From Amphiscolops sp. MND2022 (taxonomy: Eukaryota), in the NCBI GenBank assembly GCA_964187785.1, contig OZ076413.1, forward strand, positions 30,752,001-30,816,000: a DNA stretch of 64,000 bases, given 5' to 3'. Every line of letters starts with the position of its first letter. Within the stretch, counting starts at the first letter, position 1. Shown piece after piece: positions 1 through 46,248 of this stretch. The translations under genes and the position numbers were made by a program. The notes under the pieces are model-generated. The model had not been told where the DNA came from. It searched no databases and was given only the letters and a program-made list of their open reading frames with translations.

Positions 1-506
1 TATAAGTCTGAGATAAGACAAGTGCAATGTAAGCAAAGAGAAAGTGGAGAATAAGAGTCGAGGGGGAGAAGGGGGAGAGTAAGTGTAAGAGAAGTAGAGG
101 AATTGATAAGTTGAGAGAGAGAGAGAGAGCTGTAAGTTGAGCTCAGCCGTCCGGCGGGAAAGAATGAATCTCCAGCCTGTGCGCGCGGTATAAAAACAGT
201 TCAGCACAGCTGTTGAAGTGCCTGGCCGGCATGTGTTGCATGCTACCAATGGTAGCTCAGCTTTAAAATTCAAATATCCGCGGTAAGAAATAGAAATTTT
301 CACTAGTGCAATTCCTTTCCCGTAGTATTCCATTACTTATTACTCCACTTCGAGGCCGCCGCGTTATGGCCGCCGCCATATTTACTTCAACTTTCCACTC
401 TCCACACAACGTTAGTTCAAGTTTTATGTTTCTCTTTGCACGTGTTATTTTTTATAATAGAAAGCGCCTTTTGGTGATTCGTTAGAGCGTTAGTCATAGC
501 GCGACA
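1..506 (-). repeat. 3' LTR (partial, truncated by window edge)
   Basis: Matches 16305-16810 with no indel; one substitution seen by eye (444 g vs 16748 a). Begins TGTCGCG on the minus strand. Confidence 0.95.
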
Positions 507-518
507 GCTCACCCCCCT
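507..518 (-). promoter_or_regulatory. Polypurine tract (PPT)
   Basis: Minus strand AGGGGGGTGAGC directly abuts the TG start of the 3' LTR. Confidence 0.75.
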
Positions 519-620
519 GGCAGGGTGAAAAAGCAACAACTTTACTAGAGAAATTTGGGGTCAGGTCAAGAAAGAGGTATTAGGTGAAAGAGCATGAGGG
601 AAGGGGGACATGTTTTAGCA

Positions 621-1523
621 CTAGGGTTTAGAAAAAAGGGGTCTGTCAAATTGAATTTGGATTATGACGGAGTCATTGTTTAGGAAGGCTTCTCTAAAGT
701 TTACCAGGAGTTTTGTGTGCGCGATGAAGTCTTCTCTCATCAGTCCTGGGAGTGTGTAGTCGTTCTTGTGCGGGTCTTCATACTCTTCTGTTTTGGAGGG
801 ATAGGGAAAGGAGATGGACCATTTGTTGTTCTTGTCTTTTTGGTCTATGATTGAGACGATCAATTGTTGCTCGAAAGGCCACGTCCGTGGGAGAGTGAAG
901 TCGCTGGGGTGTAGATCACAAGAAATTGAGGAATGGGTTCCGCGGAAGATGTTGGCGCCATAAGGGAATAGTCTGAGGGATATTTTGCAGCCGGTTAGGT
1001 GGGTAGTGTAGATAGGGCTAGTGAAGCTATTTTTGATGTTGTTCAACGCATCATTCGGGGAGGTCTTTGCTTTTCTGTATAGTGTGGAAAAAGCGGGTAT
1101 GTGCCAAAGGATGGGTTCACCACTTCTTGCGTCTAATACGTTGGTTTTGTTGAGTAGGGCGCCTTGAAACTTGATTGTCGCTTGTAGATTGGATATTGTG
1201 AGTTCCAAGTGATTACATTTAGTCCGCGTTTCTTCTGCCAAGTTTTGGAGTTGTTTCATTTCACTAGCAAACTTTGTTCTAGGCTGTTTTATGTCGGTTA
1301 TGGGAAACGATTTCCTTAGGATCGGGGTTACCTTTTTACTTTGTGGGCTAGTTGAGACTTCCAGTTCAGCGATCCATTTGTTCAATCTTTTGATTCCCTC
1401 GAGTGTCTCGAGGTCATCTTTATTCTCTGTCCTGGATAGAGGTGGCCAGTCGTTAGCTTTGGGGAAGGAAGGAGTGCTTTTTGGGATGAAGGGGATAGCG
1501 TCTGGGTTTAGCCTCCGATTCAT
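621..1523 (-). CDS. TRAF-like accessory protein: N-terminal PAM2-like motif, coiled coil, TRAF-C/MATH domain; no RING or zinc fingers
   Basis: aa ~135-293 (GEPILWHIP...FTSPIYT...GCKISLRLFPYG...RGTHSS...WPFEQQLIVSIIDQ...FLNNDSVIIQIQFD) follows the TRAF-C pattern (G.LIWKI...S.PFYT...GYK...R.Y.NG.G.G.GTHLS...WPF.QKV...L.DQ...Y..DD..FI...VD). Heptad-like stretch at aa ~86-128. LNPDAIPFIP at aa 5-14. Confidence 0.9.
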   Translation of the reverse strand: MNRRLNPDAIPFIPKSTPSFPKANDWPPLSRTENKDDLETLEGIKRLNKWIAELEVSTSPQSKKVTPILRKSFPITDIKQPRTKFASEMKQLQNLAEETRTKCNHLELTISNLQATIKFQGALLNKTNVLDARSGEPILWHIPAFSTLYRKAKTSPNDALNNIKNSFTSPIYTTHLTGCKISLRLFPYGANIFRGTHSSISCDLHPSDFTLPRTWPFEQQLIVSIIDQKDKNNKWSISFPYPSKTEEYEDPHKNDYTLPGLMREDFIAHTKLLVNFREAFLNNDSVIIQIQFDRPLFSKP

Positions 1524-2122
1524 TGTGCTGAGATGGCTCTTAGGGGGACCGTTAGTCTTTGTCCCTTTAGGGCTGGGTTCTCTATGGTGTACTCTTGTCT
1601 CTTGTTATCCCAGAAAACGATTTTCCAAGTTGAGAATTGTGGGAGGAGAGTGTATTTCAACTCTGTGTTGAATCTGGGCTTCTTAACGTGTCTTGCTCGT
1701 TTAGTGAAGTACTCCCGCTTGTGTTGTTTCTTCAGTGGCGTGTCATCTGTTATTTTGTCATTCCATTGTTGTTGGTGTTTCCTGGGTAGTGCCCGTCTTA
1801 TGTCTTTTCCGCCGAAGCGGGGTGGATGTTGGGGCGATCGAGGTGGATGTTGAGTTGATGGGATAGGCGCTACCTCTTCTGTAAATGACAGCGGAAAGGG
1901 GAGTTGTAGTGATGTCGTTGGAGAGGGTGTTGTTGTTAGGGCGCTTGGAATCGGAGAAGGAACTGTTGAGTCTGGGGGATCTAGGAGAAAGGTAATAGTT
2001 GTGGGAGAAGCAGGTGACAGCAGGTCAGAAGGTGATAAGGGTTCTATCTGCAAGTCGTCTTCTAAGATAGAGTTAGGGATGTCGTCGTCCAGGTTTGGGA
2101 GGTCGAATAAGGGTTCTAAATT
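1520..2122 (-). CDS. Accessory ORF without AUG: acidic/Pro-Ser-Thr-rich N-terminus, basic NLS-like patch, short beta-rich C-terminus
   Basis: The frame is open from 2122 (NLEPLFDLPNLDDDIPNSILEDDLQIEPL...) to TGA at 1520-1522 and contains no Met. It is preceded by GTTTACGTTTAG, which is acceptor-like. Its stop overlaps the TRAF ORF start (ATGA). Confidence 0.6.
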   Translation of the reverse strand, partial: NLEPLFDLPNLDDDIPNSILEDDLQIEPLSPSDLLSPASPTTITFLLDPPDSTVPSPIPSALTTTPSPTTSLQLPFPLSFTEEVAPIPSTQHPPRSPQHPPRFGGKDIRRALPRKHQQQWNDKITDDTPLKKQHKREYFTKRARHVKKPRFNTELKYTLLPQFSTWKIVFWDNKRQEYTIENPALKGQRLTVPLRAISAQ

Positions 2123-2153
2123 CTAAACGTAAACTACGAAATGAGATAATAAT

Positions 2154-4303
2154 TCATATTGGAGCAACAAAGCTCTGTACCGAGGGATATAGTGATTCCT
2201 CTTTTTGTTTTAGGATTTGGAGTTCTACTCCTTTTTCTTCGTCTTCTGTTTTTACCCTTTTGTCTTCAATGCTATCCTCGAAAGGGGCCCGCGGGGTAAA
2301 TACGGAAGTTAAAACAGAGGTAAAGAAAAGGTTGTACGAAGCACTGAGCAAGGTTTTAGTGAAGCTCAGTGTGTTACCTGTAAGGTGACGAAGTTCGAAG
2401 TAGCGGAAGACTAGTACCGTGATATCTATGACGAACTTGATAAAAAGGAAAGCGCCAAAGTACGCTCCGCAGAGTTCTAGTACATAAGATATACTTCCGA
2501 ATGTTTCGAGGAACTGATTTTTAAAGTAGTCGGGTGAAATCATTCCGTCGACATAGAAATCTGTACGAGGTGCGTAATACGCGAAGGATTCTGGTCCGCT
2601 GTGGGCCATGGAGGGTATGATGAGCTCTCTTGAGAACTTCTGGAGGGCATTACGTGATGCGGCGCTGATGAGGATGTTGTCCCAAAACTCGGAGAGTTGC
2701 TTGGGAGTGTACATTCCCGCGTCCTGTGATCCTGGGAAAGATCTGGTAATCATTGGCTGGATGTCTTTGGGTCCGAAGATAGCAGGCCGGTCCCGATGTT
2801 CGGGTGAAGGTGTAAGGGTGAACCAGGAGTCCTTGTCTTCCATGTCCAGTTGGAAGAGGTTCTTAATACGATCTGTGCAGTTTTGTACGTTCGCGTTAGG
2901 ATATGTTTGTCGGGTTATGGGGTCTACAAAGGCGACCACTCCCTTGTAGAAGATTGGTATGCGGTCGTAGCATTGGTTCATCGTGTGAAGAGGTGAGTGG
3001 GATTCCGGGCAGTGGTAGAGCCATGCGAGGCTACCATCTGTGTTCAGGAACATCGAGCGATTTCCCGTGAGCATGTATCCGGCGAGTCGTGGGTTTTCCA
3101 TGGATAACATCAGGATGGTAAGGATTTGTGTTCGTTCTTGCTCACATTGAGCTTTCAATAGCTGGATCTCTGAAGCTTCGAGTAAGCGGGTGCTCTCAAA
3201 GAAGAGATAATCTAACTTGGTTCCTTGGTGGAGTTCGTAATCCATGTTGAGATAATGTGGTGTGTTGGGGTTGGAGTCGCTGGGGCCTCTGAAGAGGTGG
3301 AGTCTGCCATTACCAGAACCATCGTTGGGTGAGTAATATTGAAGTTTGGAGGTTTCTCCCATGGAGATGCCGAGTCGTCTGCCAGAAGTCATGTCGAAGC
3401 CACCAAATTGGGTCGAAACGTAGAGGGATTCATAATTGGTAGGGTAGACATCATCGGGTTTGTTGCAGTATTTCTGTGGCCTGTTGTATATTTCGAATAG
3501 GAACTTGGTAGTGGAGTCGTTGCCGCTAACTATATAGTAGTTAGAGCCATGTTTGATCATATTCACTATTTCTTTTCTGTGGACTGCGAGCACGCAGTTA
3601 TCTGGCTCTGCCCATGTATAGGCGTACGGGTCCAATGACGTGGTTTCGCAGCCGAGTTGTTCCAGGGGGCAGGGGAGAACCATCTGGAAGGGTGTGAGGA
3701 TTTTCCCGTCTCTGGTTTTGACTGATAATTCTACGTCTTGAATATGAGATTCGAAGGTTTCGCGTTTAATCCATCCGCCTGTCTTGCACTCATTACGGGT
3801 ATCAGGGTCACGTACTCCATCCCAACTTTTTCCGTATTTGGCGTTTCTCGTCTGTACTTGTTTGACTCCTTTCTTAAATTTGAGGGGTTGTCCATGGATC
3901 ATGACTTCTTTGCCTTCGCCCATGGCCTTACAGGTTTCGGGTGACAAGGAAATATCGCTGGTGATTCCGTTGTGTAGGATTGACATACTGGAGTGGTCAT
4001 TATGACCACAATGCCATTCTTCACACTCTGGTGTTTCACACGGCACATAGTAGCGTTGATAGTGCGACGAAAGTGTTTAGTGTATAACGTCACGCTAGCA
4101 CGACTTACTTCTAAGTTTTCCGGGGCCACATTGCATTGCTCTACTTGATTCAAGGCGTAGAGCTTATTTTGTGTCATTTCGCCGCAGTCGAAATGAGTTA
4201 CTCGCAATTTTTTAGCAACGCTAGCGAGGTTTGGCGTTGAACGTTGTGAGTTCACAACGGGCGCGAAATTGGCGCATAAGAAGAGTAAGAAAAATAATTT
4301 CAT
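2154..4303 (-). CDS. env: Envelope-like type I membrane glycoprotein, probably class III fusogen-like; ~715 aa if the single frameshift near 4020-4030 is repaired
   Basis: Signal peptide MKLFFLLFLCANFAPVVNS. Cys-rich ectodomain starting HFDC...YALNQVEQC and continuing WHCG, with N-glycosylation sequons. C-terminal hydrophobic segment YVLELCGAYFGAFLFIKFVIDITVLVF. ORFs 3899-4303 and 2154-4046 overlap in different frames and join as ...CRVKHQS(EE)WHCGHND. Confidence 0.85.
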
Positions 4304-4382
4304 TGTTGAAATTCTTCAGTCTGTTTTTGAATCAACCGTGTAATCGCTCCCTGTTAAAGAATCAGTTTAAGTGTTTAGTAGA

Positions 4383-4838
4383 GACCGTAAAGAGGCAAGC
4401 CGTAATATCAAACCGGCAGCTTAGCTGGCACAACACTAAGCGGAGGTTAAAATTTTATAGTAGTAACCTCACTACTGTTAAAACGTGCCGAGGGGAACGA
4501 TAAGTATTTTATTATTTCAGGGAAATAGGTGTGTGTTCCAGAGAGGAGGATTCGTAGTAAGGCCGTAAAAAGGCAAGTCGTAATATCAAACCGACAGCTT
4601 AGTGGGCACTAGCACTAAGCGGAGGCTAAAATTTTATAGTAGTAACCTCACTACTGTTAAAAAAAAAGTGCCGAAGAGTAGGTTAATTATTGGAGCTTTA
4701 GTATATTTTATTATTGAGGATCCGTTATAAGGCCGTAAAAAGGCAAGCCGTAATATCAAACCGGCAGCTTAGTGGGCACTCGCACTAAGCGGAGGTTAAA
4801 ATTTTATAGTAGTAACCTCACTACTGTTAAAAAGTGCC
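4383..4838 (-). ncRNA. Three copies (4383-4489, 4561-4672, 4731-4838) of a ~108-nt structured, pseudoknotted cis-RNA motif upstream of env
   Basis: Conserved pairings AGUAG/CUACU with GAGGUUA/UAACCUC (H-type pseudoknot), GCUUAG(UG)/(CA)CUAAGC, GCCG/CGGC, and 5' GGCAC with loop GUGCC. Compensatory GCCG/CGGC to GUCG/CGAC change in the middle copy. Spacers between copies are unrelated. Confidence 0.7.
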
Positions 4839-4883
4839 AAAATAGGAAGTTAAAAGAGACTAACTTCAACCATTGCTGAAAGT

Positions 4884-5228
4884 TCAATTGTAGTTGTCAC
4901 GGATTGATTGTAGACTGGGAGAGGTTTTGTTTCGTCTTCTCAATTCGAGGAAGTCAATGAGCTTGTTGAGGAGGAACAGTGTTAGAGGGTGGATGTGGTC
5001 GAGATAGGCAATTTGCCTATATTCCTTTAGTGCGAGTGAGAGATCAGTAGCCTCTTGGGAGTTGGTGTCAACTGGGATGAGCCAATGTCCTGGGTTTTGC
5101 GGTCGGAGGCTATGGAGTTCGATTTGTAGTGAAGGTGCGTTTTCTTTCCAAGCGATAGAGAGAATTTCGAGAAGTGTATTTGTTTCAGGGTGGCGCCAGA
5201 GAAACTTGAGTTGAATCTTAAACATCAT
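4884..5228 (-). CDS. Small accessory ORF (114 aa), unknown function
   Basis: ATG start overlaps the upstream ORF stop (ATGATGTTTAA). Globular-looking composition; shares a motif with neighbouring small ORFs. Confidence 0.7.
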   Translation of the reverse strand: MMFKIQLKFLWRHPETNTLLEILSIAWKENAPSLQIELHSLRPQNPGHWLIPVDTNSQEATDLSLALKEYRQIAYLDHIHPLTLFLLNKLIDFLELRRRNKTSPSLQSIRDNYN

Positions 5229-5613
5229 AAGTGTCGACTAGGCTGTGAAGGTATTTGATTCTAACTTCTTCTTCGAAGGGGTTGGAGGTGAGAGTGATGT
5301 CCATAAAATAAACCAAGTCGTCGAAAGCCTTGTCTTTGAGAACTGCGGGGTGTTGGAGGATGTATTGCTTGAACGAAAGGAATAAGTAGGCGTATTCCTT
5401 GGATCCGAAGTGAATAGGGAAGAGGACTAGAGCTTCTTTGTCTTCTGGTGTGAGTATACGCACTTGAATCGCAGAGGTTGTGATCTCGTAGAAGATTGAC
5501 TGTATTTCGTATTGGCCCTTGAGTTGTATGGGAGTCCAAGGAACAGGAGGTTGAAACTGTGTGTGGAAGTAGTAATTATTTCCGCGGAACACGGCGACTG
5601 CGGGAGAGGACAT
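5218..5613 (-). CDS. Small accessory ORF (131 aa), unknown function
   Basis: ATG overlaps the previous stop as TAATG at 5611-5615; shared motif with neighbours. Confidence 0.72.
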   Translation of the reverse strand: MSSPAVAVFRGNNYYFHTQFQPPVPWTPIQLKGQYEIQSIFYEITTSAIQVRILTPEDKEALVLFPIHFGSKEYAYLFLSFKQYILQHPAVLKDKAFDDLVYFMDITLTSNPFEEEVRIKYLHSLVDTYDV

Positions 5614-5834
5614 TAAATGACTGACTTGGCTCTTGTGACGACTTCAGTAGGGGTGTTGTTATATAGCAAGCTCTCCAGTAGAGGGTAGATAGGTGATGCT
5701 GGCACACAAGTGTAGGTTTCACTTTCTTCTTCTGCTATTGCGTATGCTTGTACGATAATGTTCTGCGTTGAGGGTTCCTTCTGGATATCTGTGATTTGTG
5801 AAAGACGGTTGTCGATTTTGAAGATTATGATCAT
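5613..5834 (-). CDS. Small accessory ORF (73 aa), unknown function
   Basis: First of three coupled ORFs; starts at the edge of the AT-rich 5835-6123 spacer; shared motif with neighbours. Confidence 0.62.
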   Translation of the reverse strand: MIIIFKIDNRLSQITDIQKEPSTQNIIVQAYAIAEEESETYTCVPASPIYPLLESLLYNNTPTEVVTRAKSVI

Positions 5835-6123
5835 CTGTGAGATACTTCAGTGTTCACTGTTGTTCAAACATGGCAAATCTGAGAATGTAATCATCAGTTA
5901 TTTCATTGCGTTGGAGGACAGAGGTGTTTGAAAAGTATAAACACGATCTCGTAGAAGATCGTGGTTGAGTACAGAGAAGTTTCAAAAGATATATTCTATC
6001 TATTGTAGGATTATCGTAGGCGGTTTAGGCAAATAACCATAAGATATTGTTATAAAATAAGAGATAAATATTTGTTTAAGCATGCATTACTTTAGGACAA
6101 AAAAAAGCTAAGATATCTTCAGA

Positions 6124-6768
6124 ATGAGTAACAACAACGAGTCTGACTACTACGAGGAATCATCGACCGATGAGGAAACAGTTGCGTCTGCTGCTTCGTC
6201 GTCTGCTCCCTCGTCGTCTGCTCCCTCGTCGTCTGCTCCCTCGTCGTCTGTGGGCCCTTCGTCGGCCGCTGGGCCTTCTTTGTCGTTGGCTGGGCCTTCT
6301 TTGTCGGCGGCTGGGCCGTCCTCCTCTTCTGCGCCTGTTGCTGCTGTGGCCCCCAGGCCAGTCCTGCAGGCCTCCACAGTAGTGGCTCAAGGGGTTTTAG
6401 AGAACCCCGGAGAGCAGAGTTTTCTCAGCCTCTTTAACCGGAGGGACGTGGACCGGTTAGAGAATTGGGCCTCTTTGTCCCGTTCCATGCGGGGGTCTCC
6501 CGGGTTTGCCTTATCTGGGGCGCCCATCCCAAATGCCTTTGTGAGCTTCTTGAGGGCCAACCTGGGAGCCCGTTGGGAGGGAACCCTCCTGTCCCCTCTA
6601 GGGGAATTAGTGCTGTGTTAACTGAGGGCCTATATAGATGGGTTCTGCCAGTTGACCAGCTTCGAGAGGGGGCAGTGGGTGAGGCTGTACCAGTTATGGA
6701 CCAGAGAGGAGCGGGCTTCCCAGTTGAGGCGGCTAGCGGAGAAAGGCGGTTTCCTGGAGATTGAGTAG
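6124..6768 (+). CDS. Antisense accessory ORF (acidic N-terminus, Ser/Ala/Pro repeats, helical-looking C-terminus) with an in-frame TAA at 6619-6621
   Basis: ATG 6124 to TAA 6621 gives 165 aa. The same frame stays open for 48 more codons (LRAYIDGFCQLTSFERGQWVRLYQLWTREERASQLRRLAEKGGFLEIE) to TAG 6766-6768. 15-bp (SSSAP x3) and 21-bp tandem repeats keep the frame. Confidence 0.55.
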
Positions 6769-6930
6769 GCGCAAGTCGCCTCTCATCTCCAGGAAAATTC
6801 TCTACTATTTTTATACGCTTCTGTGCTTGTGGCTTTTCGTAAGTCATGTTCGGGATTGCACAAATAATATCGATAAACGGAAGTAGAATATATTAAAGGT
6901 AATACATCGCTAATAGGTTAAATGTGCCGG

Positions 6931-7317: not shown

Positions 7318-7325
7318 GATGTAGA

Positions 7326-10300: not shown

Positions 10301-12836
10301 TTGTATCCTTTTTTGTGAGTTCGTAAAAGGGTCGACTATCGACGTGAAGGTTCTTGATGTAGCAGCTGTAGAAACCTAAGGCTCCCAAGAAGCTTTTCAC
10401 TTCGGTTTTGGTTTTTGGTGATTTGAGATTATGTAGGTCTCTTACTCGTTTAGCTACGGGTTGTATTCCTTCTGCTGCAATCACATGTCCCAAAAACTTG
10501 ACTTTCCTCAAGAAGAAGAGTGTTTTGTCAGGTGCCGCTTTTAGTCCCGCTTTCCGTAGTAGGTTATGGTATTCTTGAATCACTGTGAACATTTCTTGTT
10601 TACTTTTCGCTTGCATCAACGTGTCGTCTATGTAGGTGATTGCTTGTTTCTTTTTAATGAGAGGTTCGAAGTGAATTGTCATCATTCGGCTAAAGAAGCT
10701 TGGTAACCCTTTAAGTCCGTAGAATCCTCTGGTGAAGGTGTATTGTTTCCCGCCTATGATGAAGCTTGTAAGTTTTTGTGTAGGCTCGTCTAATGGGACT
10801 TGGTGAAATGCACAGGAGAGATCACTTACTGAGAAGATGTTCCCGTTGATTAGTGTCATTATGGTTTGGATCGGTTCTAAGGGCCAGGAGTAGTTTGTTA
10901 GATCCGTCACTGAATTTAGGTATCTTGCGTCTATGATCAGTTTTACATAGTCGTGTTTTGGTTGTAGTATAATAGGATTTACGAATAAGGATCCCATTTC
11001 GTCGTCATCGCCCATCTCTCTGATAATATCGGCGTCTTTGAGTTGTGTGAGTAGCTTCTCTAACTTTTCTCTTAGGTGAAGTGGTACTTTGCTGGGTCTC
11101 TGTCTCTTCAGGATTGCTCCAGGTTCGAGTTTGATGTTAAATTTCTGTCTGGTTTTTCCTACGTCGAATTTGTGTTGGGAGTATACATCTCTCGCATCCA
11201 TTAGTTGGTCTATTAGGAGCACAAGTTCCTCGTCAGTAAGGTCTGAGTAGCGAAAGTCGAATTCTTTGATGTATTGCACTGCTTCTTTGTTCTGGTACTG
11301 AAGGTAATACTCGATCAGTCTTTCGTTGTCTTCTTTTTGCCTGAAGATTTTAAATTGCTCATCGCAGGGTGGTTGACAAGACTTTGCGTCACTCGTAAAG
11401 TCTGTCTCCAGCTCTCTATGTTTAAGGTGAAATTGCTCGGAAAATTGTTGTATCTCGTCTTCCAGCGCGTATTCGGGGTCTCCTCTCGTAGTCATAGCAT
11501 AGACGTCTAGTTCATTTCTTGTATAAATTCGGAGTTGTATTTCCGAGTAGGCAAAAACATCTTGAATAATTTGTGTCACATCTTGCCATTGGAAATCTTC
11601 TAGTTCTGACGCTTCTCGTAACATAGAAATGGTCTTGATACAATTCATTTTGGCGTGTGCTTTTAGAGTCTCTAGCGTTTGGACTAAGATTTGTGGGTCG
11701 ATTTTGTCTTTTGATTTAGCTTTTGTGATTAGGACGTATATGAATCGTTTTAGATTCATGTCCCAGTAAGGTATTGTATCCCCTTTGAGTGGTTTCTGTT
11801 TTGCGCAAGATTCTTTTAACAAGGGTATGTTCGTTAGGATTTCTTTCGAGAAGCCTTTGGCTGGCTTCAGATCTGCCGGGACAAAGATCATGATGGAGTC
11901 GGGTCTGCTGAGGATTGTAGTAGAATTTCCTCCTTCTATTCTGATGCAATCGTTCATATCTTGTGAAGGGATGGTGGAGTGCAACAGGAAACAGTCATTG
12001 TATTCTTCGTTTTCGTTTAGGATAGCGTAGGCGAGTTCCGTAGGGTTTCTAACTTGGTATTTTGGAATTTCTTGGTCTAATACGTCGAGCAGAGAGTATC
12101 CAATAGTTCCTTTTACTAGGGTGATTGTATGGTTTTTGTTATTTTCCATGACGATTGGCAAAGTCTTCTCAAATCTTGTACAAAGGACATTTATAAAATT
12201 TAGTCCTGTAGAGACTGCTTTTCTGTTGGGTAGGAACGTAGATCCGGGAGGAAAGGAGTTCTTGGGGTTTTCCGGTGCAAATTTGTAACATCTTGTCGTC
12301 TTTGGTTCGATATACATTGAGTGAGGAATTCGGACTGAGAGTATTTGTGATACGTAGGGGTAACATTTGTTGAGTTGTAGACTGCCATAGCAGAAAGTAT
12401 TTATAGGTCTTTTGAGTTCTATGCCAGGAAGATCAAAGTGTATTTTGTTAACTTGTTCTTGACAGAAGTTCATTCCAAGGAGGTTTTGGGTCTTCATCTC
12501 TGTTATCCAGACTGTCAGTGGGAAGTTATGTTGTCCATCGGAATCGTAGTAGAGTTTAAGGGTGATGTATCCCATCATAGGGATGATCTGCCCAGAGTAG
12601 TTCCGTGTTGTGTTGTTACTTCTGCTGAGTTCGAGGTCTTGTTGAAATTGACAGAGTTCTCTAAAGGTCCTGTAGTTAATGATTGAAGATGTTGCCCCAG
12701 TGTCTAGTAGAAATTCGATTTCTAAGCCACTATCTTTTTGTGAGTCTCCGGCAGCAAAATAATAAAGATTAAGACTAAATTTTAGTGGGGCAGTGCTGCT
12801 GTTACGGTTTTTCGGAGACCTTAATAGTTTAAAGGG
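7326..12836 (-). CDS. pol: Pol: aspartic protease, dUTPase-like spacer, TARG1-like macrodomain, RT, RNase H, integrase
   Basis: The frame is open upstream of the tracked ATG to the gag end and includes FLLDTGA (DTG at 12696-12704). RT YIDD; RNase H HVDSSNVG...DHKP; IN HHCC (H...GH...CVSC), D-D-E core (HIDHKGP, HDRGTAF, KVETQN) and LGPF. Confidence 0.96.
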   Translation of the reverse strand, partial: PFKLLRSPKNRNSSTAPLKFSLNLYYFAAGDSQKDSGLEIEFLLDTGATSSIINYRTFRELCQFQQDLELSRSNNTTRNYSGQIIPMMGYITLKLYYDSDGQHNFPLTVWITEMKTQNLLGMNFCQEQVNKIHFDLPGIELKRPINTFCYGSLQLNKCYPYVSQILSVRIPHSMYIEPKTTRCYKFAPENPKNSFPPGSTFLPNRKAVSTGLNFINVLCTRFEKTLPIVMENNKNHTITLVKGTIGYSLLDVLDQEIPKYQVRNPTELAYAILNENEEYNDCFLLHSTIPSQDMNDCIRIEGGNSTTILSRPDSIMIFVPADLKPAKGFSKEILTNIPLLKESCAKQKPLKGDTIPYWDMNLKRFIYVLITKAKSKDKIDPQILVQTLETLKAHAKMNCIKTISMLREASELEDFQWQDVTQIIQDVFAYSEIQLRIYTRNELDVYAMTTRGDPEYALEDEIQQFSEQFHLKHRELETDFTSDAKSCQPPCDEQFKIFRQKEDNERLIEYYLQYQNKEAVQYIKEFDFRYSDLTDEELVLLIDQLMDARDVYSQHKFDVGKTRQKFNIKLEPGAILKRQRPSKVPLHLREKLEKLLTQLKDADIIREMGDDDEMGSLFVNPIILQPKHDYVKLIIDARYLNSVTDLTNYSWPLEPIQTIMTLINGNIFSVSDLSCAFHQVPLDEPTQKLTSFIIGGKQYTFTRGFYGLKGLPSFFSRMMTIHFEPLIKKKQAITYIDDTLMQAKSKQEMFTVIQEYHNLLRKAGLKAAPDKTLFFLRKVKFLGHVIAAEGIQPVAKRVRDLHNLKSPKTKTEVKSFLGALGFYSCYIKNLHVDSRPFYELTKKDTNFCWNQEHEDLFQQIKKRISEDTVLAVPSTKYPFHIHVDSSNVGTGCILIQQFPEGKRIISFNSRVFAKEEQKMSTLHRELCGIVSALQTYEHYIIGSPFPIYLYCDHKPILYLWGRKGQVSPRFFRYQVIISKFPNLKIIWTPGSNLAFPDILSRNVSIEEHKKHQLSHKILPNDIHFFDEHGTQIHYKIKHEENEETSKNDFYPILYEKGDERKILHLQNDGNNFTVNNIYEEPNLPKIESAQSCLDAGRELGKFSELKIRSGTRDSTSDSSQNTYSSINSDADDEACTDNQSHEVNETNYELNTEDLTARNTGIPENAKAIEHLSLPTNSTEKHKTPARELVSQLDKISKEVDLDVTTILQEQINDPVLSVVRRWIQTGNRPTPKSPELQHSKGLMRYSQEFDRLTIEENGNLLCYNEPTDKTEEENLRICLPLSLFLACFRLGHYNDLGGHMGAEKTYLNAKRFYYWPGMHDWICALTQDCVSCQSNKSKQRRNNEVPLEDCETETQVFRTVHIDHKGPLNPPSRGNSHCLLIIDAFSRYLMAYPVRDTGAQSTINAMEKWIMHYGIPQSIIHDRGTAFVNTEFVNWTKELGITLRPRTAHSPWTNGKVETQNQHIARYWRNFLNDSGNNWAQLAAKFAFAHNTSVNYTTGKTPYEIVFCNKPQIPMSLKLGLYRNKNKNCRSQFCNGLPPHCHSENQVKNELLNGLLRPQLSQNLLERETAFKKIYSSTYEKCRKQTARSHAYRNRFKLGSHLNIGQKVLLENHRKDLSKSQKLQQLRLGPFTVTKRITNTTYQIKNDQNPENLRTVHRNHLIEYFPKEETLPPLIEEYTTPYRGDTDFYNNFVKGRIERLNVSEPQILGDLCILPVRNQQRQTTAQKRVRTPQSTDSGIISPENHRLGTPTTPDQPTTSRPPGSTTPIQTLTQQITPEPLTTTPATSTKSLTPLQELRRAVASHVERNPRYQRAQPNQPAPLSILRQKTRVGYKA
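11520..11948 (-). other. TARG1/OARD1 (Poa1p-like) macrodomain within Pol
   Basis: RFIYVLITKAKSKDKIDPQILVQTLETLKAHAKMNCIKTISMLREASELEDFQWQDVTQIIQDVFAYSEIQLRIYT aligns by eye, without gaps, to the TARG1 C-terminal half as recalled (RYIYYLITK...L..SLEAMKSH...LSMPRIGCGLDRLQW..V...IEEVF...I.I.VY). Confidence 0.8.
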
Positions 12837-14275
12837 CGAATATCGGCGACAGAGTTCACCGAGTAATCTGTTTCGAGAAACTGTACGGTGTTATGTCTTC
12901 CCATGTCGTTAGTTCTAGGGAACCTTTGTTCGTAGGTTTGAGTGGGGGTGTTTGGTCTTTCGTTTCTGTTTTGTGGTCTATTAAAGACTGAGTTATTCCT
13001 TGGTGGAAGAGGCTGTATGTTGCGGTTGAAGGAGTTAGGCTGGTCTCTGTTGAAGCTGAACGGAGATCTTGCTCTTTGGGGCCCAGGAGAAACACTTCTG
13101 GAATTGTTAGAATTGTTTAGAAAAGGTCTTCTTCCTTCTTGTGAAAATCTTTGGTTACCAGGACTGAATCTTGTATTCATAGGTCGGCGTTCTGGGTTGA
13201 AATTTCTTCTTTGTGGTCTATCATATTGGTTCCGGGCAGGGTTTGACTGCATGGCTCCAGCAAGTGCTAGTTGATGTGCCACAGCCATATGTTTTCTGAT
13301 TTCTGAATCGGGTAGTCTAGTTTGGAATCTAGAACCATGTCCAGGTCCAGTTCTTTTGTTGTAATCGTTGGTGAAAGTTATTCGTCTCTCTGGGTTGGAT
13401 TCATTTTGAACTTTCTTGATTTCTTCATCTCTCATCTTCTTTCTGCACCAGTTAGGCGTATGCCCATTTGTTCGGCAGTAGCTGCAAAACCTGGTGGCCA
13501 TTCTACGTCCTGTTGCGTTCGGATCAACAGTTTTCTCTATTGCATTAATAGTGTTGTTCGTCTGTTCTTTGATTTGTAGCTTGATTCCTTTGATGTCTTC
13601 TCGCAATTCTTGGATGAGTGGGTCTGCGTGTGATTCTCCACCGGTGAGAGAGGTAGTTACTGTGTAAGAAAGGTCTTTGTTTATTACAGCTTGAGAGAAC
13701 TGCTCCCAGGTTGCATTCGGATGATCCATTAAGTATTCGTGTGCCTTTTCCCTCAGTTTCGGGGGTCGAAGGCCTCTCAGTGAGTAGTCAATGCACCTCT
13801 GTCTTCTTTGTCTGTCTTGTGCTGCTCTTTCGGCGTCTCTATTGTTCTGTGCGACTCCGGCTAGATCATCTGGCCATCCTTTTCCGACTACTATTTTAAT
13901 TCTGTGTAGGAAGTTCTTTATTTCTTCTCCATCTCGTCTGATGACGTGTTCGGCTTCCATTCTGTGTCTAAATTTGTTTCTGCCATCTGCGAATCGCGTT
14001 ATGAACCTCTCTCTGATTTCTGCCCAAGTGTTAGCGTCTGTGATGCTGGTCTCGAACCACTCTGCTGCGGGTCCTCTTAATAGTGTAGCAAAATAGGATT
14101 TTCTTCTGAAGTTGTAGTCATCAAGTGCTGGTCCGTTGGCCGGGGTATCACCGTGAGAAAACCGGAACTTCTTTTCAATGAGCTGTATGAATTGTTCAGG
14201 ATCTTGATCTGGGTCTGTTCCTGTGAATTGGTCTCGGCCTAGGTCTGGATAAGCCAAGTAATTTTGCGCAGCCAT
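12821..14275 (-). CDS. gag: Gag (capsid-like region, CCHC zinc knuckle, Arg/Asn/Pro-rich tail)
   Basis: 484-aa ORF upstream of pol; CSYCRTNGHTPNWC = C-X2-C-X4-H-X4-C; LRGPAAEWF and LRGLRP resemble retrotransposon capsid motifs. Confidence 0.92.
   Translation of the reverse strand: MAAQNYLAYPDLGRDQFTGTDPDQDPEQFIQLIEKKFRFSHGDTPANGPALDDYNFRRKSYFATLLRGPAAEWFETSITDANTWAEIRERFITRFADGRNKFRHRMEAEHVIRRDGEEIKNFLHRIKIVVGKGWPDDLAGVAQNNRDAERAAQDRQRRQRCIDYSLRGLRPPKLREKAHEYLMDHPNATWEQFSQAVINKDLSYTVTTSLTGGESHADPLIQELREDIKGIKLQIKEQTNNTINAIEKTVDPNATGRRMATRFCSYCRTNGHTPNWCRKKMRDEEIKKVQNESNPERRITFTNDYNKRTGPGHGSRFQTRLPDSEIRKHMAVAHQLALAGAMQSNPARNQYDRPQRRNFNPERRPMNTRFSPGNQRFSQEGRRPFLNNSNNSRSVSPGPQRARSPFSFNRDQPNSFNRNIQPLPPRNNSVFNRPQNRNERPNTPTQTYEQRFPRTNDMGRHNTVQFLETDYSVNSVADIRPLNY
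12827..12836 (-). promoter_or_regulatory. -1 programmed ribosomal frameshift site (overlapping C CCU UUA and U UUA AAC)
   Basis: Minus strand CCCTTTAAAC is in the gag frame two codons before the gag TAA. The pol frame is -1 relative to gag and open through this site. Confidence 0.85.
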
Positions 14276-15290
14276 TGTGAGCTATTGAGGTTATAAAAGA
14301 TAGAAGATGAAGTAAGGAAAAATAAGCCAAAGACTCTGTGAGGTATGATACTCCTGGTTTTTGAGAGTAACTACAAAGAGCGGAAGTAAAAATTGTTTGT
14401 ACAATGATTCTAACAGTGATAATTATTAGGCAGGTCTGACAAAACATATACTCCGTAATTCGCTGCTAGTAAAAATGAAATTAGCGCATCTCAGCCCAGG
14501 ATAGGCACATTCCCAGTATTTATTACTGAAATTTCAAAATTTTTAGGGGATACTTACAAATCCCGCTTGTGTTACGATTACCGTAAAAAGGGTAGTTCGG
14601 AGTATACCAATCCTCCGAGTTAAGCTTAAAAGATTGGAGAGTACAGTCGGTCCAATAGGTCTTCAATTCGCTAGACTAGCCTTTCAATGGCTTTTGTAAA
14701 AGTAGTACTAGAACTAACCAACAGAGGGAGTCACTCTCGTCCTCAGGATTAAGTGCGCGGGGCCAAGATCACTATCATGCAAACACTCGGGTACTATCAC
14801 TAGAATACTAGGTTTCCCACTTGGAATGCTACACAGGTTCCGGGACACCCACTGGGCTCACGGCCTTCAACCAGTCTCCGAGGAGACCTAGGCGGGCTTT
14901 TACTTAATGTGTGTCCGTCTGGACTTGAGTGAACTTCCCAACTGTAAGTTTAAATTCCGTGTTAGAGGGCAGTTTCATTCTTGTTTAGGACCGAATGTAG
15001 TCTAGCATTTCCGTAAAAATAGATCAGCGCTAACCTTTTTGTGGATTGAGAGGACTAAGTTGGGTAGAGCACAGTCTCTTCCAACGGCTGTTAAGCTGGA
15101 GAGATTCTATTAGAGTATTTACTAGCAGTTCTGTAATTTATATAGACTAAAGAAGCCACATATTGGGGCAGTAGGAGAAAAAAGAAAATCAGAAGTAAGA
15201 TTAAGAGAAATAGGTAGTTAACCCTAACTTCTGAGAGTAGGGATTCGAACAGATTGCTCATTTACTTCTCTATAGTAAGAGAAAAAGGAT

Positions 15291-15308
15291 GCCTCACTGG
15301 TCGCACCA
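15291..15308 (-). promoter_or_regulatory. Primer binding site
   Basis: TGGTGCGACCAGTGAGGC starts 3 nt after the 5' LTR end, complementary to a tRNA 3' CCA end. The tRNA identity was not determined. Confidence 0.85.
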
Positions 15309-15311
15309 GTT

Positions 15312-16810
15312 TGTCGCACGCATGGATAAATTTCAGTTCTGCTATTTTACAGTTTCCTCTTTTAGAGGGGAATTCCAAATTTGTTATCCGTATTAGTCAG
15401 CCCAGCTGTTACAACATTTGGCAAAATGCTTTTCCAACAACTGTTGTTTTATTGAAGTAGAACAAGTAGAAAAGTCTCAATAACTTAATTTCTTTTTTGT
15501 AATACCGAAAAGAAAGTGCCTTGCGTGTACGTGCGAACAAAGGAACTTGCGTGAGTAAGTGCAAGGCAGGGAATGTAAATGAGCTCTCTGAACTAAAAAA
15601 AAAAACATATGTTAGCAAACTTGTTGAATTACATAAAAGAGTTGAACTTCAGACATATCAGTTTTTATTCAACTGTTTACAAGTATTCAGTCAAACTCAC
15701 CAAATTTATTTGCCAGCAACCGAAGTAATATCTTAGCTATTTCAATTTAGAGCATAAATTGATGAAGAAATTTAGCATCGAAGGAAATTCATAGTAATTT
15801 CCTTTAGTTCGAAGAAAGTTTTTTTACGAAAAATCCAGTTTTGGTGTTGTAATAACTTAGACAACACTATTTAATTTTATAGTCTCTACTCCTTTGTTTT
15901 AGGAATAGCATTAAGACTTTAGGAATAGCATCTTTTTTTTTTTTTTGAATATGGGAATGGTAAAGACAAATAAGTTAACAGGGGAAAACCGCAGAATTAA
16001 ATCAGCAGAATTATTCTAAGATAGAATTTTAACAACCGCAGAATTAAATCAGCGGAATTATTATAAGATAGAATCCGCAGAATTGAATCAGCGGAATTAT
16101 TCTAAGATAGAGTTTAGTTAGAAGGAGGGAGAGTAAAAAATCTCCTCTAAAAGAAAAAATCTAAGATATTTTCGACTCACCCAACTGGAGACCAAGTTGA
16201 ATTGAAGAGAATTTTCTAAGATAGAAAATTCTGTTGGGGAATAGAGAAAAGGAAAAGATAAGTTTTTGCTTGAGGAAAGGGAGAAAAGGAGGAAAGTTTG
16301 ACTTTATAAGTCTGAGATAAGACAAGTGCAATGTAAGCAAAGAGAAAGTGGAGAATAAGAGTCGAGGGGGAGAAGGGGGAGAGTAAGTGTAAGAGAAGTA
16401 GAGGAATTGATAAGTTGAGAGAGAGAGAGAGAGCTGTAAGTTGAGCTCAGCCGTCCGGCGGGAAAGAATGAATCTCCAGCCTGTGCGCGCGGTATAAAAA
16501 CAGTTCAGCACAGCTGTTGAAGTGCCTGGCCGGCATGTGTTGCATGCTACCAATGGTAGCTCAGCTTTAAAATTCAAATATCCGCGGTAAGAAATAGAAA
16601 TTTTCACTAGTGCAATTCCTTTCCCGTAGTATTCCATTACTTATTACTCCACTTCGAGGCCGCCGCGTTATGGCCGCCGCCATATTTACTTCAACTTTCC
16701 ACTCTCCACACAACGTTAGTTCAAGTTTTATGTTTCTCTTTGCACGTATTATTTTTTATAATAGAAAGCGCCTTTTGGTGATTCGTTAGAGCGTTAGTCA
16801 TAGCGCGACA
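15312..16810 (-). repeat. 5' LTR, 1499 bp, termini TGTCGC...GCGACA
   Basis: 6-bp terminal inverted repeat with TG...CA ends; PBS adjacent; right part is duplicated at 1-506. Confidence 0.92.
15989..16113. repeat. Three 39-bp imperfect direct repeats inside the LTR
   Basis: ccgcagaattaaatcagc(a/g)gaattatt(c/a)taagatagaat at 15989, 16036 and 16075. Confidence 0.9.
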
Positions 16811-27367: not shown

Positions 27368-27380
27368 TGCTTGCGACAGT

Positions 27381-27398
27381 TCCCGGGTCGCGGCACCA
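27381..27398 (-). promoter_or_regulatory. BEL primer binding site, tRNA-His-like
   Basis: TGGTGCCGCGACCCGGGA, 3 nt after the 5' LTR; resembles the complement of the tRNA-His 3' end (TGGTGCCGTGAC...). Confidence 0.75.
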
Positions 27399-27401
27399 AA
27401 A

Positions 27402-46234: not shown

Positions 46235-46248
46235 CTGGGCCCATAACC
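46235..46248 (-). promoter_or_regulatory. Copia-type PBS for an initiator tRNA-Met half-molecule
   Basis: GGTTATGGGCCCAG directly after the 5' LTR, the same sequence as the Drosophila copia PBS. Confidence 0.85.

Follow-up and report, generated by a model that had tools for sequence, protein, structure and literature searches.

A stretch of 64,000 nucleotides of contig OZ076413.1 (assembly GCA_964187785.1, filed under Amphiscolops sp. MND2022; positions 30,752,001 to 30,816,000), referred to here as the window, carries in positions 1-16810 a Ty3/gypsy-type LTR element with an unusually long region between pol and the 3' LTR. This raises the question of whether the additional open reading frames in that region are a genuine and conserved gene set, comparable to that of complex vertebrate retroviruses, or a chance accumulation in a single copy. 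A first-pass annotation, made from the sequence alone, had described an element of about 17.8 kb with near-identical LTRs, PBS and PPT, gag, a frameshifted pol, env, seven further ORFs (TRAF-like, AUG-less, four small and one antisense) and a triplicated structured RNA, and had read it as a recently active, possibly infectious metavirus lineage combining a fusogen, a signalling decoy and an ADP-ribose eraser or reader. The description was confirmed almost point for point, whereas the interpretation was supported only in part. The element is a young, slightly damaged copy of an abundant virus-like family of about 18 kb, which carries an envelope gene plus at least five conserved extra protein genes and a structured RNA, a gene set as elaborate as that of complex vertebrate retroviruses.

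Anatomy of the element and its gene content

The element lies on the minus strand and comprises a 5' LTR, PBS, gag, a -1 frameshifted pol, nine downstream features and a 3' LTR cut by the window edge, giving a full length of about 17.8 kb, as the first-pass annotation had estimated. The features and the evidence for each are collected in Table 1, in which L001-L010 denote related loci from two long-read assemblies (two ENA samples) and L014 a 2.5-kb Cyphastrea coral metagenome contig that holds only the 3' end of the element.

Table 1. Features of the element, in window coordinates, with the supporting evidence.
Positions	Strand	Feature	Evidence
1-506	-	3' LTR, partial (its first 506 nt in element sense; the remaining 993 nt lie beyond the window start)	505 of 506 bases identical to 16305-16810
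507-519	-	Polypurine tract (..AGGGGGGTGAGC) abutting the 3' LTR	Same motif in L001 and L010; core GGGGTGAG also next to the LTR in L006 and L007; the core abuts the 3' LTR in three lineages
621-1523	-	TRAF-like gene (300 aa): N-terminal part, coiled coil and MATH/TRAF-C domain; no RING or TRAF zinc fingers	Pfam MATH_2 9e-12; PDB TRAF5 and TRAF4 about 2e-7, with GCN4-like coiled-coil hits; homologues at the same position in L001-L010 and L014; dN/dS 0.11-0.28
1520-2122	-	AUG-less conserved frame o177 (200 codons): Pro/Ser-rich N-terminus, basic stretch, conserved C-terminal domain; probably a downstream exon; its stop overlaps the TRAF ATG (ATGA)	No in-frame ATG in 9 of 11 copies; opens directly after (Y)n-TTTAG in ten of the eleven; dN/dS 0.05-0.17; no Pfam or PDB match
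2154-4303	-	env, class III (gB-type) fusion glycoprotein gene, broken in this copy by one frameshift	Pfam PF24664 3e-23; intact at 714-729 aa in L001, L003, L005, L006 and L010; one frameshifting indel against L001; dN/dS 0.03-0.06; Foldseek hits herpesvirus gB and GP64 only
4367-4833	-	Array of three copies of a conserved structured RNA core of about 95-117 nt (4716-4833, 4546-4663, 4368-4484), between o114 and env	Tandem-repeat period 170; 19 covariance-model hits, all sense strand and all at this position; 8 of 22 pairs with compensatory changes against 2.1 in shuffles; 88% identity to L006
4884-5228	-	Small ORF o114 (114 aa)	Conserved in L001-L006 and L010; dN/dS 0.06-0.13; hhalign to o131, probability 88%, E 3.5e-6
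5218-5613	-	Small ORF o131 (131 aa), the most conserved of the three; overlaps o114 by 11 nt	93-99% aa identity; dN/dS 0.02-0.07; same 11-nt overlap in L006; only 4 clusters in 1.84 billion representatives; no fold match
6124-6768	+	Antisense gene (200-233 aa in the other copies: Ser/Ala-rich N-terminus, conserved C-terminal domain ending ..GGFLEIE), broken in this copy by one premature stop	Intact in L001, L002, L003, L005 and L010; C-domain dN/dS 0.09-0.10; the break is an in-frame stop
6931-7317	-	Small ORF o128 (128 aa); ATG 8 nt after the pol stop	79-98% identity in L001-L005 and 40% in L006; dN/dS 0.05-0.16
7326-12890	-	pol, open frame in -1 relative to gag: protease about 12459-12728, degenerate TARG1-like macrodomain about 11514-11933, RT-RNase H about 9897-10958, acidic bridge, integrase about 7851-8978	Pfam; PDB OARD1 1e-9 over the C-terminal half only; Ty3 RT/RH 9e-30; dN/dS 0.04
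12821-14275	-	gag (484 aa) with one CCHC knuckle; overlaps pol by 70 nt, the overlap holding a U_UUA_AAC heptamer in register	Pfam Retrotrans_gag 1e-4; translation
14276-15290	-	Untranslated leader of about 1 kb between PBS and gag	No long ORF; no homology to the leaders of L006 and L007
15291-15308	-	Primer binding site, 3 nt after the LTR end	Unique in the window (0 expected by chance); exact copy downstream of the 5' LTR in L006 and L007, and present in the deleted copy L004
15312-16810	-	5' LTR, 1,499 nt, termini TGTCGC...GCGACA, internal 44-47-nt tandem repeat	End fixed by the PBS and by homology to the L001 3' LTR, which ends exactly at its last base

Several of the original assignments required correction. 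Of the four small ORFs proposed, one, at 6434-6847(-), is spurious, being not conserved and overlapping the antisense gene, while the other three are conserved and under purifying selection; o131 and o114 are probable paralogues, and o128 is only weakly similar. The macrodomain, situated between the protease and RT, is only half recognisable in this copy, although it is clearly TARG1-like in relatives, with L006 matching human OARD1 over the whole domain (E 2e-25). The lineage of the window has lost the glycine-rich loop, which binds ADP-ribose phosphate in its relatives, and the N-terminal motif shared by the relatives and human TARG1, but the domain is still constrained (omega 0.07).

The env product has a signal peptide, one TM segment and no furin motif. 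Its structural model has low confidence (pLDDT 44, TM about 0.13), so that the class III assignment rests on consistent but weak fold hits together with Pfam and the published classification of such env genes. The 170-nt repeat noted upstream of env (2.6 copies) is real and contains the structured core, which is present in 1-3 copies across the family. Compensatory changes on both sides occur in 8 of 22 pairs against 0-1 in slid controls, although the RNA alignment used for the pair counts was fitted to the model structure, and the two most divergent lineages, L007 and L009, lack the element yet keep env.

Conservation, age and condition of the family

Whether other copies retain the region at about 507-7317, the point on which the first-pass annotation had staked its reading, was examined across the related loci. 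Eight of nine related loci from the two long-read assemblies keep the gene order; L001-L003 and L005-L010 keep pol through TRAF, and L014 keeps env, o177 and TRAF. The loci span env identities down to about 55%, and their different flanks and 5-45% divergence exclude assembly duplicates of a single locus. All accessory genes are under purifying selection (dN/dS 0.02-0.28), with dS ranging from about 0.3 to saturation between the divergent copies. Lineages have also recombined, since dS between the window and L001 is 0.98 in pol but 0.01 in env.

The lineage is young, with LTR pairs that are 99.8-100% identical. In addition to the near-identical LTRs of the window, a sister copy, L010, is 99.58% identical over 16.8 kb and has a 4-bp target duplication (AGAC), an LTR pair with 2 mismatches in 1,489 nt and all its called ORFs open, including intact env and antisense genes, and the LTR pairs of L006 and L007 are 99-100% identical over the 300 nt compared. 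Abundance is indicated by 90%-identity protein clusters with 36 to 850 members. The copy in the window, however, carries two private breaks, the env frameshift and the premature stop in the antisense gene, and cannot be a competent one; it is a defective member of an otherwise intact, recently active family. The sequence comparisons by themselves suggested that the host is probably a cnidarian, likely a stony coral, an inference that rests on four short JGI contigs, of which one keeps env-o177-TRAF.

Interpretation of the accessory gene set

The most plausible reading, with a probability of roughly 0.8, is that positions 1-16810 are a recent insertion of a multi-copy endogenous retrovirus-like element of the Ty3/gypsy group (Metaviridae), belonging to a family that has evolved a complex genome. 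Replication as an LTR retroelement, by tRNA-primed reverse transcription from a conserved PBS, production of Gag and Gag-Pol by -1 frameshifting, and integration with a 4-bp duplication, is shown by sequence here and in sister copies, as is the strong purifying selection on the envelope gene, and the fusogen, the TRAF-C protein and the macrodomain are all real at family level. What these genes do, by contrast, is inferred from domain content and selection, without transcript, protein or particle data, and this applies equally to the terms signalling decoy, host countermeasure and infectious. In this view, the selection on env would imply that spread depends on membrane fusion, that is, on cell-to-cell or germline re-infection. 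Downstream genes are probably expressed from spliced and polycistronic RNAs, as o177 opens at a conserved 3' splice-site motif, although the splice donor was not found, and the o177/TRAF and o131/o114 pairs have conserved stop-start overlaps that fit termination-reinitiation. The basic o177 protein and the invariant structured RNA in front of env are candidates for a Rev/RRE-like pair controlling export or use of unspliced and env RNA. The RING-less TRAF-like protein most likely acts as a dominant-negative decoy in TRAF-dependent innate signalling, but this gene overall evolves under omega below 1, so an arms race is not demonstrated. The Pol macrodomain was, in this view, ancestrally a TARG1-like ADP-ribose hydrolase or binder, and an eraser role is doubtful in the present lineage. 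The antisense gene and the three small ORFs are real genes without an inferred role.

Alternative explanations were weighed against this reading. That the region between pol and the 3' LTR is a one-off patchwork of nested insertions or captured host fragments might be suggested by its unusual length, its hypervariable stretch (6000-6900) and its tandem repeat of variable copy number, but this is refuted by the conserved gene order and the purifying selection described above, and no internal LTR pairs or foreign TE domains were found there. It is also conceivable, although unlikely on present evidence, that the family is an exogenous, horizontally transmitted enveloped virus, a true invertebrate retrovirus, of which these loci are recent germline integrations, rather than an element that spreads mainly within the host lineage. 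The very strong constraint on env, the mosaic lineages, which require co-packaging of different genomes, the candidate immune-modulating genes, of a kind typical of viruses that face host defences, and the occurrence of relatives in at least three datasets favour this possibility. Conversely, no relative was found in the IMG/VR viral contig collection, all copies seen are integrated, in contigs whose coverage labels in the record names (about 60-115x) are uniform, as for one host genome, and each genome holds hundreds of copies, as for a germline-amplifying element. Moreover, Drosophila gypsy and ZAM show that env can serve soma-to-germline transfer without horizontal spread.

Different roles for individual features are likewise possible but less favoured. 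The TRAF-like protein could be, instead of an immune decoy, a MATH-domain adaptor used for another purpose, for example recruiting a host ubiquitin ligase or deubiquitinase (SPOP- or USP7-like use of MATH), or tethering particles or pre-integration complexes, given that Pfam matches the general MATH family as well as the TRAF/meprin family, that identity to TRAF4/5 is low, and that in planarian Burro elements the MATH_TRAF_C motif travels with BIR, BCL2-like and ubiquitin-like motifs (PMC6431247). This remains doubtful, because the best solved relatives are all TRAF-C domains of TRAF2-5 (29 PDB hits, the only non-TRAF ones being GCN4 coiled coils), a coiled coil precedes the domain, as in TRAF-N, and it is the fastest-evolving sense-strand gene (dN 0.2-0.3); loss of RING and zinc fingers with retention of coiled coil plus TRAF-C is the classic dominant-negative layout. 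Similarly, the repeat upstream of env may act at the DNA level, as an internal enhancer or promoter for an env or accessory subgenomic transcript, or as an IRES, rather than as a protein-bound RNA export or response element. Its position directly upstream of the env ATG, its variable copy number, as in enhancer repeats, and loops as invariant as its stems, which suit sequence-specific recognition of either DNA or RNA, are compatible with such a role. This reading is nevertheless considered tentative, since the compensatory changes argue for selection on RNA pairing, hits are confined to the sense strand, and L007 and L009 keep env without the repeat.

Comparison with known systems

The gag-pol-env(gB) core is a known kind, and precedents exist for parts of the design, whereas no description of the accessory set was found in the literature examined, Repbase and GyDB not being included. 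Env-carrying Ty3/gypsy elements with HSV/gB-type env, the ancient errantiviruses of Chary & Hayashi (eLife 2026, PMC13524379), are reported in cnidarians, ctenophores, tunicates, rotifers and others, and share the LTR, gag, pol, env order, a Ty3-like RT/RH, an uncleaved gB-like class III env and multiple near-identical copies per genome, with cnidarian hosts documented. That paper, whose dataset may or may not include the present family, describes three ORFs only, and its text holds no mention of TRAF, macro, accessory or antisense genes. The present family is about 18-20 kb, with roughly 3 kb of extra genes between pol and env, two more genes after env and a macrodomain inside Pol.

Complex retroviruses (deltaretroviruses, lentiviruses and spumaviruses, with lokiretroviruses for the env type) offer a resemblance in the way the genome may work, through accessory genes 3' of pol, a downstream exon without its own AUG, an antisense gene (as HBZ or ASP), a structured cis RNA that could serve a Rev/Rex-type factor, and immune-modulating proteins. 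The element is not a member of this group, as its RT-RH is closest to Ty3 rather than to retroviral RTs, no second RNase H or tether was detected, env is class III, on the evidence given above, and none of the accessory proteins is homologous to retroviral ones. Fish epsilon-like endogenous retroviruses with macro-domain or CNPase ORFs (Basta et al. 2009, cited in PMC4977317), and the macrodomains of alpha-, corona- and hepeviruses, provide examples of a virus-borne macrodomain, generally read as countering ADP-ribosylation-based defence. Those are Retroviridae or RNA viruses, whereas here the domain is an in-frame, TARG1/OARD1-like Pol domain of a Ty3/gypsy element that is degenerate in the window's own lineage.

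Among other invertebrate elements, Cer1 of Caenorhabditis elegans with its CERV protein (PMC10309623) is a Metaviridae element encoding an extra protein needed for export of unspliced genomic RNA, a precedent for post-transcriptional regulators outside Retroviridae; no sequence relation was detected, a single extra function was described there, and Cer1 has no TRAF-like gene, macrodomain or antisense gene. Bdelloid rotifer LTR retrotransposons (Rodriguez et al. 2017, PMC5408684) carry env-like and captured additional ORFs, described there as shared among diverse retroelement types; the set found here turned up only in this family in the searches that were run. The giant gypsy-like Burro/GYPSM1 elements of planarians (Jurka 2007; Grohme et al. 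2018; Arkhipova & Yushenova 2019, PMC6431247) are likewise oversized, with an env related to negative-strand RNA virus glycoproteins and a MATH_TRAF_C module, a separate accessory ORF in Dugesia tigrina, and were interpreted as meddling with host signalling. In Burro, env lies in frame between gag and pol, dUTPase sits between PR and RT, and BIR, BCL2-like and ankyrin motifs, none of which was found in the present element by domain searches, are fused into a polyprotein of about 5,000 aa, whereas here env follows pol, a macrodomain sits between PR and RT, and the accessory genes are separate small ORFs.

Replication signals and core genes

The element lies on the minus strand (table), and its two LTRs are in direct orientation with TG..CA termini. 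In element sense, the 5' LTR begins with TGTCGC and ends with GCGACA. The LTR end is confirmed independently, as the homology between this LTR and the 3' LTR of L001, one of the related loci (L001-L010), stops exactly at its last base. Because the window start cuts the 3' LTR after 506 nt, the full element is about 17.8 kb long, as estimated in the first-pass annotation. Three bases after the 5' LTR comes an 18-nt primer binding site (PBS), which is unique in the window and recurs letter for letter in three other lineages, namely in the deleted copy L004 and, downstream of the 5' LTR, in L006 and L007. A search for tRNA genes found none in the window or in L001-L007. A purine tract with the core GGGGTGAG abuts the 3' LTR here and in L001, L006, L007 and L010. 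A short target-site duplication is present in L010, a 99.6% identical sister copy, as a 4-bp AGAC repeat.

The gag gene has a weak Retrotrans_gag match and a CCHC knuckle. The pol frame is open from 12890 to 7326, in -1 relative to gag, and the 70-nt overlap holds a U_UUA_AAC heptamer in the gag register shortly before the gag stop, which is the context of a programmed frameshift, not damage. The gag-pol junction differs between lineages: in L006 (9947-9954) pol is in the +1 frame with only an 8-nt overlap, whereas in L007 (9889-9941) the two are in the same frame, separated by stops, which may reflect real diversity of recoding or damage in those copies. The leader between PBS and gag also varies, from about 1 kb in the window to about 0.7 kb in L006 (7827-8550) and about 20 nt in L007 (8474-8494), with no detectable homology between them.

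Within Pol, the Pfam matches are arranged in the order protease (PR), RT, RNase H, integrase zinc finger, integrase core and an SH3-like C-terminus, with integrase last as in Ty3/gypsy elements. In a comparison with solved structures, rather than in a phylogeny with reference sets, the best solved relative of RT-RNase H is yeast Ty3 (9e-30), ahead of foamy virus (1e-21), caulimovirus (6e-19) and MLV-type (6e-18) enzymes. Two long inserts are present, one of about 400 aa between protease and RT, and an acidic bridge of about 300 aa between RNase H and integrase, in which no second RNase H-like Pfam match was detected.

The PR-RT insert of the window matches human OARD1/TARG1 only over the C-terminal 77 residues (E 1e-9), with Pfam Macro remaining below threshold. 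Related Pol proteins, which are 38-50% identical in this region, align with OARD1 over the whole domain, L006 giving 2e-25 over residues 24-151. The N-terminal HC(I/V)SAD..M..G motif and the glycine-rich loop (..GCGLD) shared with OARD1 are kept in the relatives P0015-P0020, P0188 and P0202, whereas both are replaced in the window, in the relative P0014 and in L002, although the conserved Lys is kept. The domain is nevertheless under purifying selection in this lineage (omega 0.07 at dS 0.64). On these alignments, the family would carry a TARG1-like macrodomain in Pol, which in the window's lineage is a constrained but probably non-canonical derivative.

The gag, pol and env genes lie on one strand inside the LTRs, as in the gB-type env-carrying Ty3/gypsy elements called errantiviruses in the broad sense of PMC13524379. 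In the window, env is split into two overlapping ORFs, the C-terminal piece of which matches Pfam Monjiviricetes_fusion (PF24664, 3e-23), whereas in L001, L003, L005, L006 and L010 the gene is one ORF of 714-729 aa. Against L001, the window gene differs by 8 substitutions and one frameshifting indel. The intact relative P0023 has a signal peptide, one C-terminal membrane segment, 16 cysteines and no furin motif. Its AlphaFold model is poor (pLDDT 44), and on this weak basis (TM 0.13) all 50 listed Foldseek PDB matches, of 96 that reach E <= 0.001, are herpesvirus gB or baculovirus GP64, while a sequence profile search of the PDB found nothing. The model gives only weak support for a class III (gB/GP64-like) fusion glycoprotein. 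This fits the "HSV/gB-type" env of metazoan Ty3/gypsy elements described by Chary and Hayashi (PMC13524379). No relative of env was found in IMG/VR.

Features of the element and of the surrounding window, with pairwise Nei-Gojobori dN/dS estimates
Feature	Position	Strand	dN/dS	Remarks
3' LTR, partial	1-506	-		same sequence as 16305-16810 with one mismatch
TRAF-like gene	621-1523	-	0.11-0.28	300 aa
o177	1520-2122	-	0.05-0.17	AUG-less frame
env	2154-4303	-	0.03-0.06	one frameshift in this copy
o114		-	0.06-0.13	small ORF
o131		-	0.02-0.07	small ORF
Hypervariable stretch	6000-6900			15-nt and 21-nt tandem repeats at 6185-6250 and 6257-6317
Antisense gene	6124-6768	+	0.09-0.10	value for C-terminal domain; one premature in-frame stop in this copy
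Rejected ORF	6434-6847	-		opposite the antisense gene
o128		-	0.05-0.16	small ORF; ATG 8 nt after the pol stop
pol	7326-12890	-	0.04	-1 relative to gag
gag	12821-14275	-
Leader	14276-15290	-		between PBS and gag
PBS	15291-15308	-		18 nt
5' LTR	15312-16810	-		1,499 nt
Tandem repeat in LTR	15987-16115			44-47-nt unit, about 3 copies
ORF in LTR	16161-16637	-		158 aa; GGTGAGT sites, 16181 and 15701
BEL/Pao-type element	19479-28100	-		ORFs at 20724-23081 and 23015-27367; flanking repeats at 19479 and 27402
Copia-type element	41092-46547			1,122-aa gag-pol ORF at 42354-45722; LTRs at 41092 and 46248
261-nt repeat family	40595, 40870, 46855			around the Copia-type element
Direct repeats	60374-60837			two identical 182-nt copies 282 nt apart

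Accessory genes and the structured RNA upstream of env

To establish whether the accessory region is real, the loci behind 12 homologues of the TRAF-like protein, and behind Pol and Env relatives, were fetched. Eight of nine loci from two ENA samples (L001-L003 and L005-L010) show the same order, that is, pol, a small ORF, the antisense ORF, two overlapping small ORFs, env, an ORF of about 170-200 codons and then a MATH/TRAF gene. The ninth locus, L004 (6568-10936), is an internally deleted family member that keeps the PBS, two RNA elements, a pol and an o114 remnant, part of env, and open o177 and TRAF-like frames, and it may be a non-autonomous derivative. A 2.5-kb JGI contig (L014) keeps env, o177 and TRAF. 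In the dN/dS estimates, dS runs from about 0.3 to saturation between the divergent copies and is near zero in the 3' genes of the window-L001 pair. These are protein-coding genes maintained by selection on the element, and the reading of the region as a nested insertion or one-off capture was rejected on this evidence. The first-pass annotation had named beforehand, as an outcome that would refute its proposal, that other copies lack the 507-7317 region or that it varies at random, and this was not what was found. The observation made in that annotation held in nearly all its points, an exception being one of its small ORFs (listed as rejected in the table), which has only weak partial hits (37-46% identity) in two loci and none in the others, stays open only in the near-identical L010, and lies opposite the antisense gene. 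Exact look-ups of the window's TRAF-like and Pol proteins returned no record.

The TRAF-like gene encodes a MATH/TRAF-C domain (residues 139-291) preceded by a GCN4-type coiled coil (residues 74-118), and its best solved relatives are TRAF5, TRAF4, TRAF3 and TRAF2. No Pfam match was detected outside MATH in the window protein or in the 459-aa L006 protein, and with no RING or TRAF zinc fingers it is therefore TRAF-like, not a full TRAF. It is the fastest-evolving sense-strand gene, with 57-67% aa identity where pol is 92-95% identical.

The o177 frame is open for about 155-207 codons in all eleven copies examined and contains no in-frame ATG in nine of them, namely the window, L001-L006, L008 and L014. 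In ten of the eleven copies, all except L007, whose frame opens before the env stop, it opens directly after a pyrimidine run ending in TTTAG, 23-47 nt past the env stop in the seven copies where this was measured. Conservation reaches the first codon, and the simplest reading is a 3' splice site with the start codon supplied by an upstream exon, although no donor was found. The 158-aa ORF inside the LTR runs into a GGTGAGT donor-like site, a second GGTGAGT follows an AATAAA, and ORFs are also called at the corresponding LTR position in L001 and L010, so that this could be a first coding exon and donor for the putative spliced accessory RNAs, or chance. The o177 protein has a basic stretch and a conserved C-terminal domain, and its stop overlaps the TRAF start (ATGA here, TAATG in L006).

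Among the small ORFs, o131 and o114 overlap by 11 nt here and in L006. Profile comparison suggests that o131 and o114 are paralogues (probability 88%, E 3.5e-6) and that o128 may be a third (probability 34%). Only four clusters of o131 were found in 1.84 billion representatives, and its AlphaFold model (pLDDT 65) gave no Foldseek match below E 0.4. The antisense gene is 200-233 aa long in L001, L002, L003, L005 and L010, with a repetitive Ser/Ala-rich N-terminus and a conserved C-terminal domain. The hypervariable stretch, which is only 52-70% identical in nucleotides even to L001, coincides with the N-terminal half of this gene and is the fastest-evolving coding region of the element. Pfam searches with the small ORFs, o177 and the antisense protein found nothing, and PDB profile searches with the antisense protein and o177 gave nothing significant.

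A 170-nt repeat contains a core of about 95-117 nt, which occurs three times in the window, L001, L005 and L010, twice in L003 and L004, and once in L002, L006 and L008, always on the sense strand between o114 and env. The core is nearly invariant among lineages whose synonymous sites are saturated, and it is 88% identical in L006, where Env is about 56% identical. The divergent lineage L007 lacks it and has instead a long array of 61-nt tandem repeats between pol and env (18211-18969). RNAalifold predicts three to four helices for the core. On the model-fitted alignment, 98.6% of cells pair, and eight of 22 pairs show changes on both sides, against 2.1 +/- 1.0 in shuffles (0 of 500 reach the observed value) and 0-1 in slid controls. 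Although the fit to the model biases these counts upward, two compensatory pairs are visible in the plain MAFFT alignment. An Rfam search of the element and of the whole window gave no match.

Age, recombination and surroundings of this copy

The window's LTRs are 99.8% identical. L010, in the same assembly, is 99.58% identical to the window copy over 16.8 kb and has an LTR pair differing at 2 positions plus one gap, together with intact env and antisense genes. The LTR pairs of L006 and L007 are 99-100% identical over the 300 nt compared. Protein clusters at 90% identity hold 36 (pol) and 128 (env) members for this subfamily, and up to 850 for relatives. The window copy has exactly two breaks, the frameshift in env and the stop in the antisense gene, both of which are private to it.

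Relatedness to L001 is mosaic, since dS is about 0.98 in pol (7326-12578) but 0.14-0.17 in o128 and o131 and 0.00-0.03 in o114, env, o177 and TRAF (0.01 in env and 0 in o177; 621-4303 for the env-to-TRAF segment). This indicates that the copies are recombinants of diverged lineages of the family, as expected from template switching between co-packaged RNAs. The tandem repeat inside the LTR is expanded to many copies in the 3' LTRs of L002 and L003, and L006 has 59-nt repeats at a similar LTR position.

The window is a nest of young LTR elements. A BEL/Pao-type element, whose ORFs hold Peptidase_A17, RT, integrase, DUF1759 and DUF5641, is flanked by repeats that are 100% identical over the 300 nt reported, each holding the same 198-aa ORF, while the LTRs of the Copia-type element are likewise 100% identical over the 300 nt reported.

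All relatives in the protein collection come from two ENA assemblies, ERZ25074608 and ERZ26859043, with flanks that carry animal-type genes (7tm_1, DUF4200). The only named link is the JGI metagenome Ga0126343, cited as the coral Cyphastrea sp. 2 in bioRxiv 10.1101/391565, whose contigs carry env at about 60% identity and the env-o177-TRAF order. A cnidarian, probably scleractinian, host is therefore likely but not shown for the window.

Interpretation and comparison with known elements

Sequence and comparison establish the replication signals of an LTR retroelement, the programmed -1 frameshift context, the integration footprint, the coding status of nine genes and the selection on them, the RNA pairing signal, and recent amplification and recombination. 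By contrast, env-dependent spread, splicing into o177, expression of accessory genes from multiply spliced RNAs under a Rev/Rex-type factor (for which the acceptor motif and the structured RNA are only indirect indications), reinitiation at the overlapping gene pairs, the pairing of o177 with the RNA element as regulator and target, the TRAF-like protein as a dominant-negative decoy, and the macrodomain as an ancestral counter to ADP-ribosylation are inferences. The interpretation offered in the first-pass annotation is supported in part.

A further-reaching reading, possible but held only tentatively, is that Metaviridae of cnidarians have independently evolved a "complex retrovirus" organisation, comprising a spliced, AUG-less basic regulator acting on a dedicated structured RNA, an antisense gene, a family of small accessory proteins, and two host-interface modules, a dominant-negative TRAF and a Pol-embedded TARG1-like macrodomain, in a family that would be currently active, and possibly infectious, in reef-building corals. 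Accessory-gene batteries, antisense genes and RNA response elements are textbook hallmarks of complex vertebrate retroviruses, whereas invertebrate Ty3/gypsy elements are usually treated as gag-pol with or without env. This family keeps at least six extra genes (five sense-strand and one antisense) and a structured RNA under purifying selection across deep divergence, which would show that such complexity arose convergently outside Retroviridae. It would also provide natural antagonists of two conserved innate pathways, TRAF signalling and ADP-ribosylation, in early-branching animals. If the host is a stony coral, the family is an abundant and recently active virus-like component of coral genomes, relevant to coral genome evolution and immunity. 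Additionally, it yields several orphan protein families and one new RNA motif with clear comparative signals.

In the literature examined, which did not extend to Repbase or GyDB, no paper combining a macrodomain with gypsy or LTR-retrotransposon pol was found, and no description was found of a Pol-embedded TARG1-like macrodomain in Metaviridae, or of this combination of a putatively spliced AUG-less gene, an antisense gene, a small-ORF family and an RNA element. What is already known is the gag-pol-env core with a gB-type env, reported for Ty3/gypsy elements of cnidarians (PMC13524379). The element is not an errantivirus in the strict sense of the insect genus, which has a baculovirus-F-type env and an RNase H plus pseudo-RNase H bridge, since its env has no cleavage site and gives gB-like hits and its bridge has no second RNase H-like match. 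It likewise did not show the features of Retroviridae that were examined, in that Ty3 is the closest RT-RNase H among solved structures and the bridge has no RNase H match that would indicate a tether.

Among other systems, macro-domain ORFs have been reported in fish epsilon-like ERVs (PMC4977317), and an RNA-export protein has been described in Cer1 (PMC10309623). Odin retrotransposons and lokiretroviruses differ in having a dual RNase H and in their env status (PMC9040795). The planarian Burro/GYPSM1 elements share a MATH_TRAF_C module with the present family (PMC6431247), but in Burro env lies in frame between gag and pol, dUTPase sits between PR and RT, and BIR, BCL2 and ankyrin motifs are present, whereas here env follows pol, the PR-RT insert is the macrodomain-like region, and no such Pfam matches were detected.
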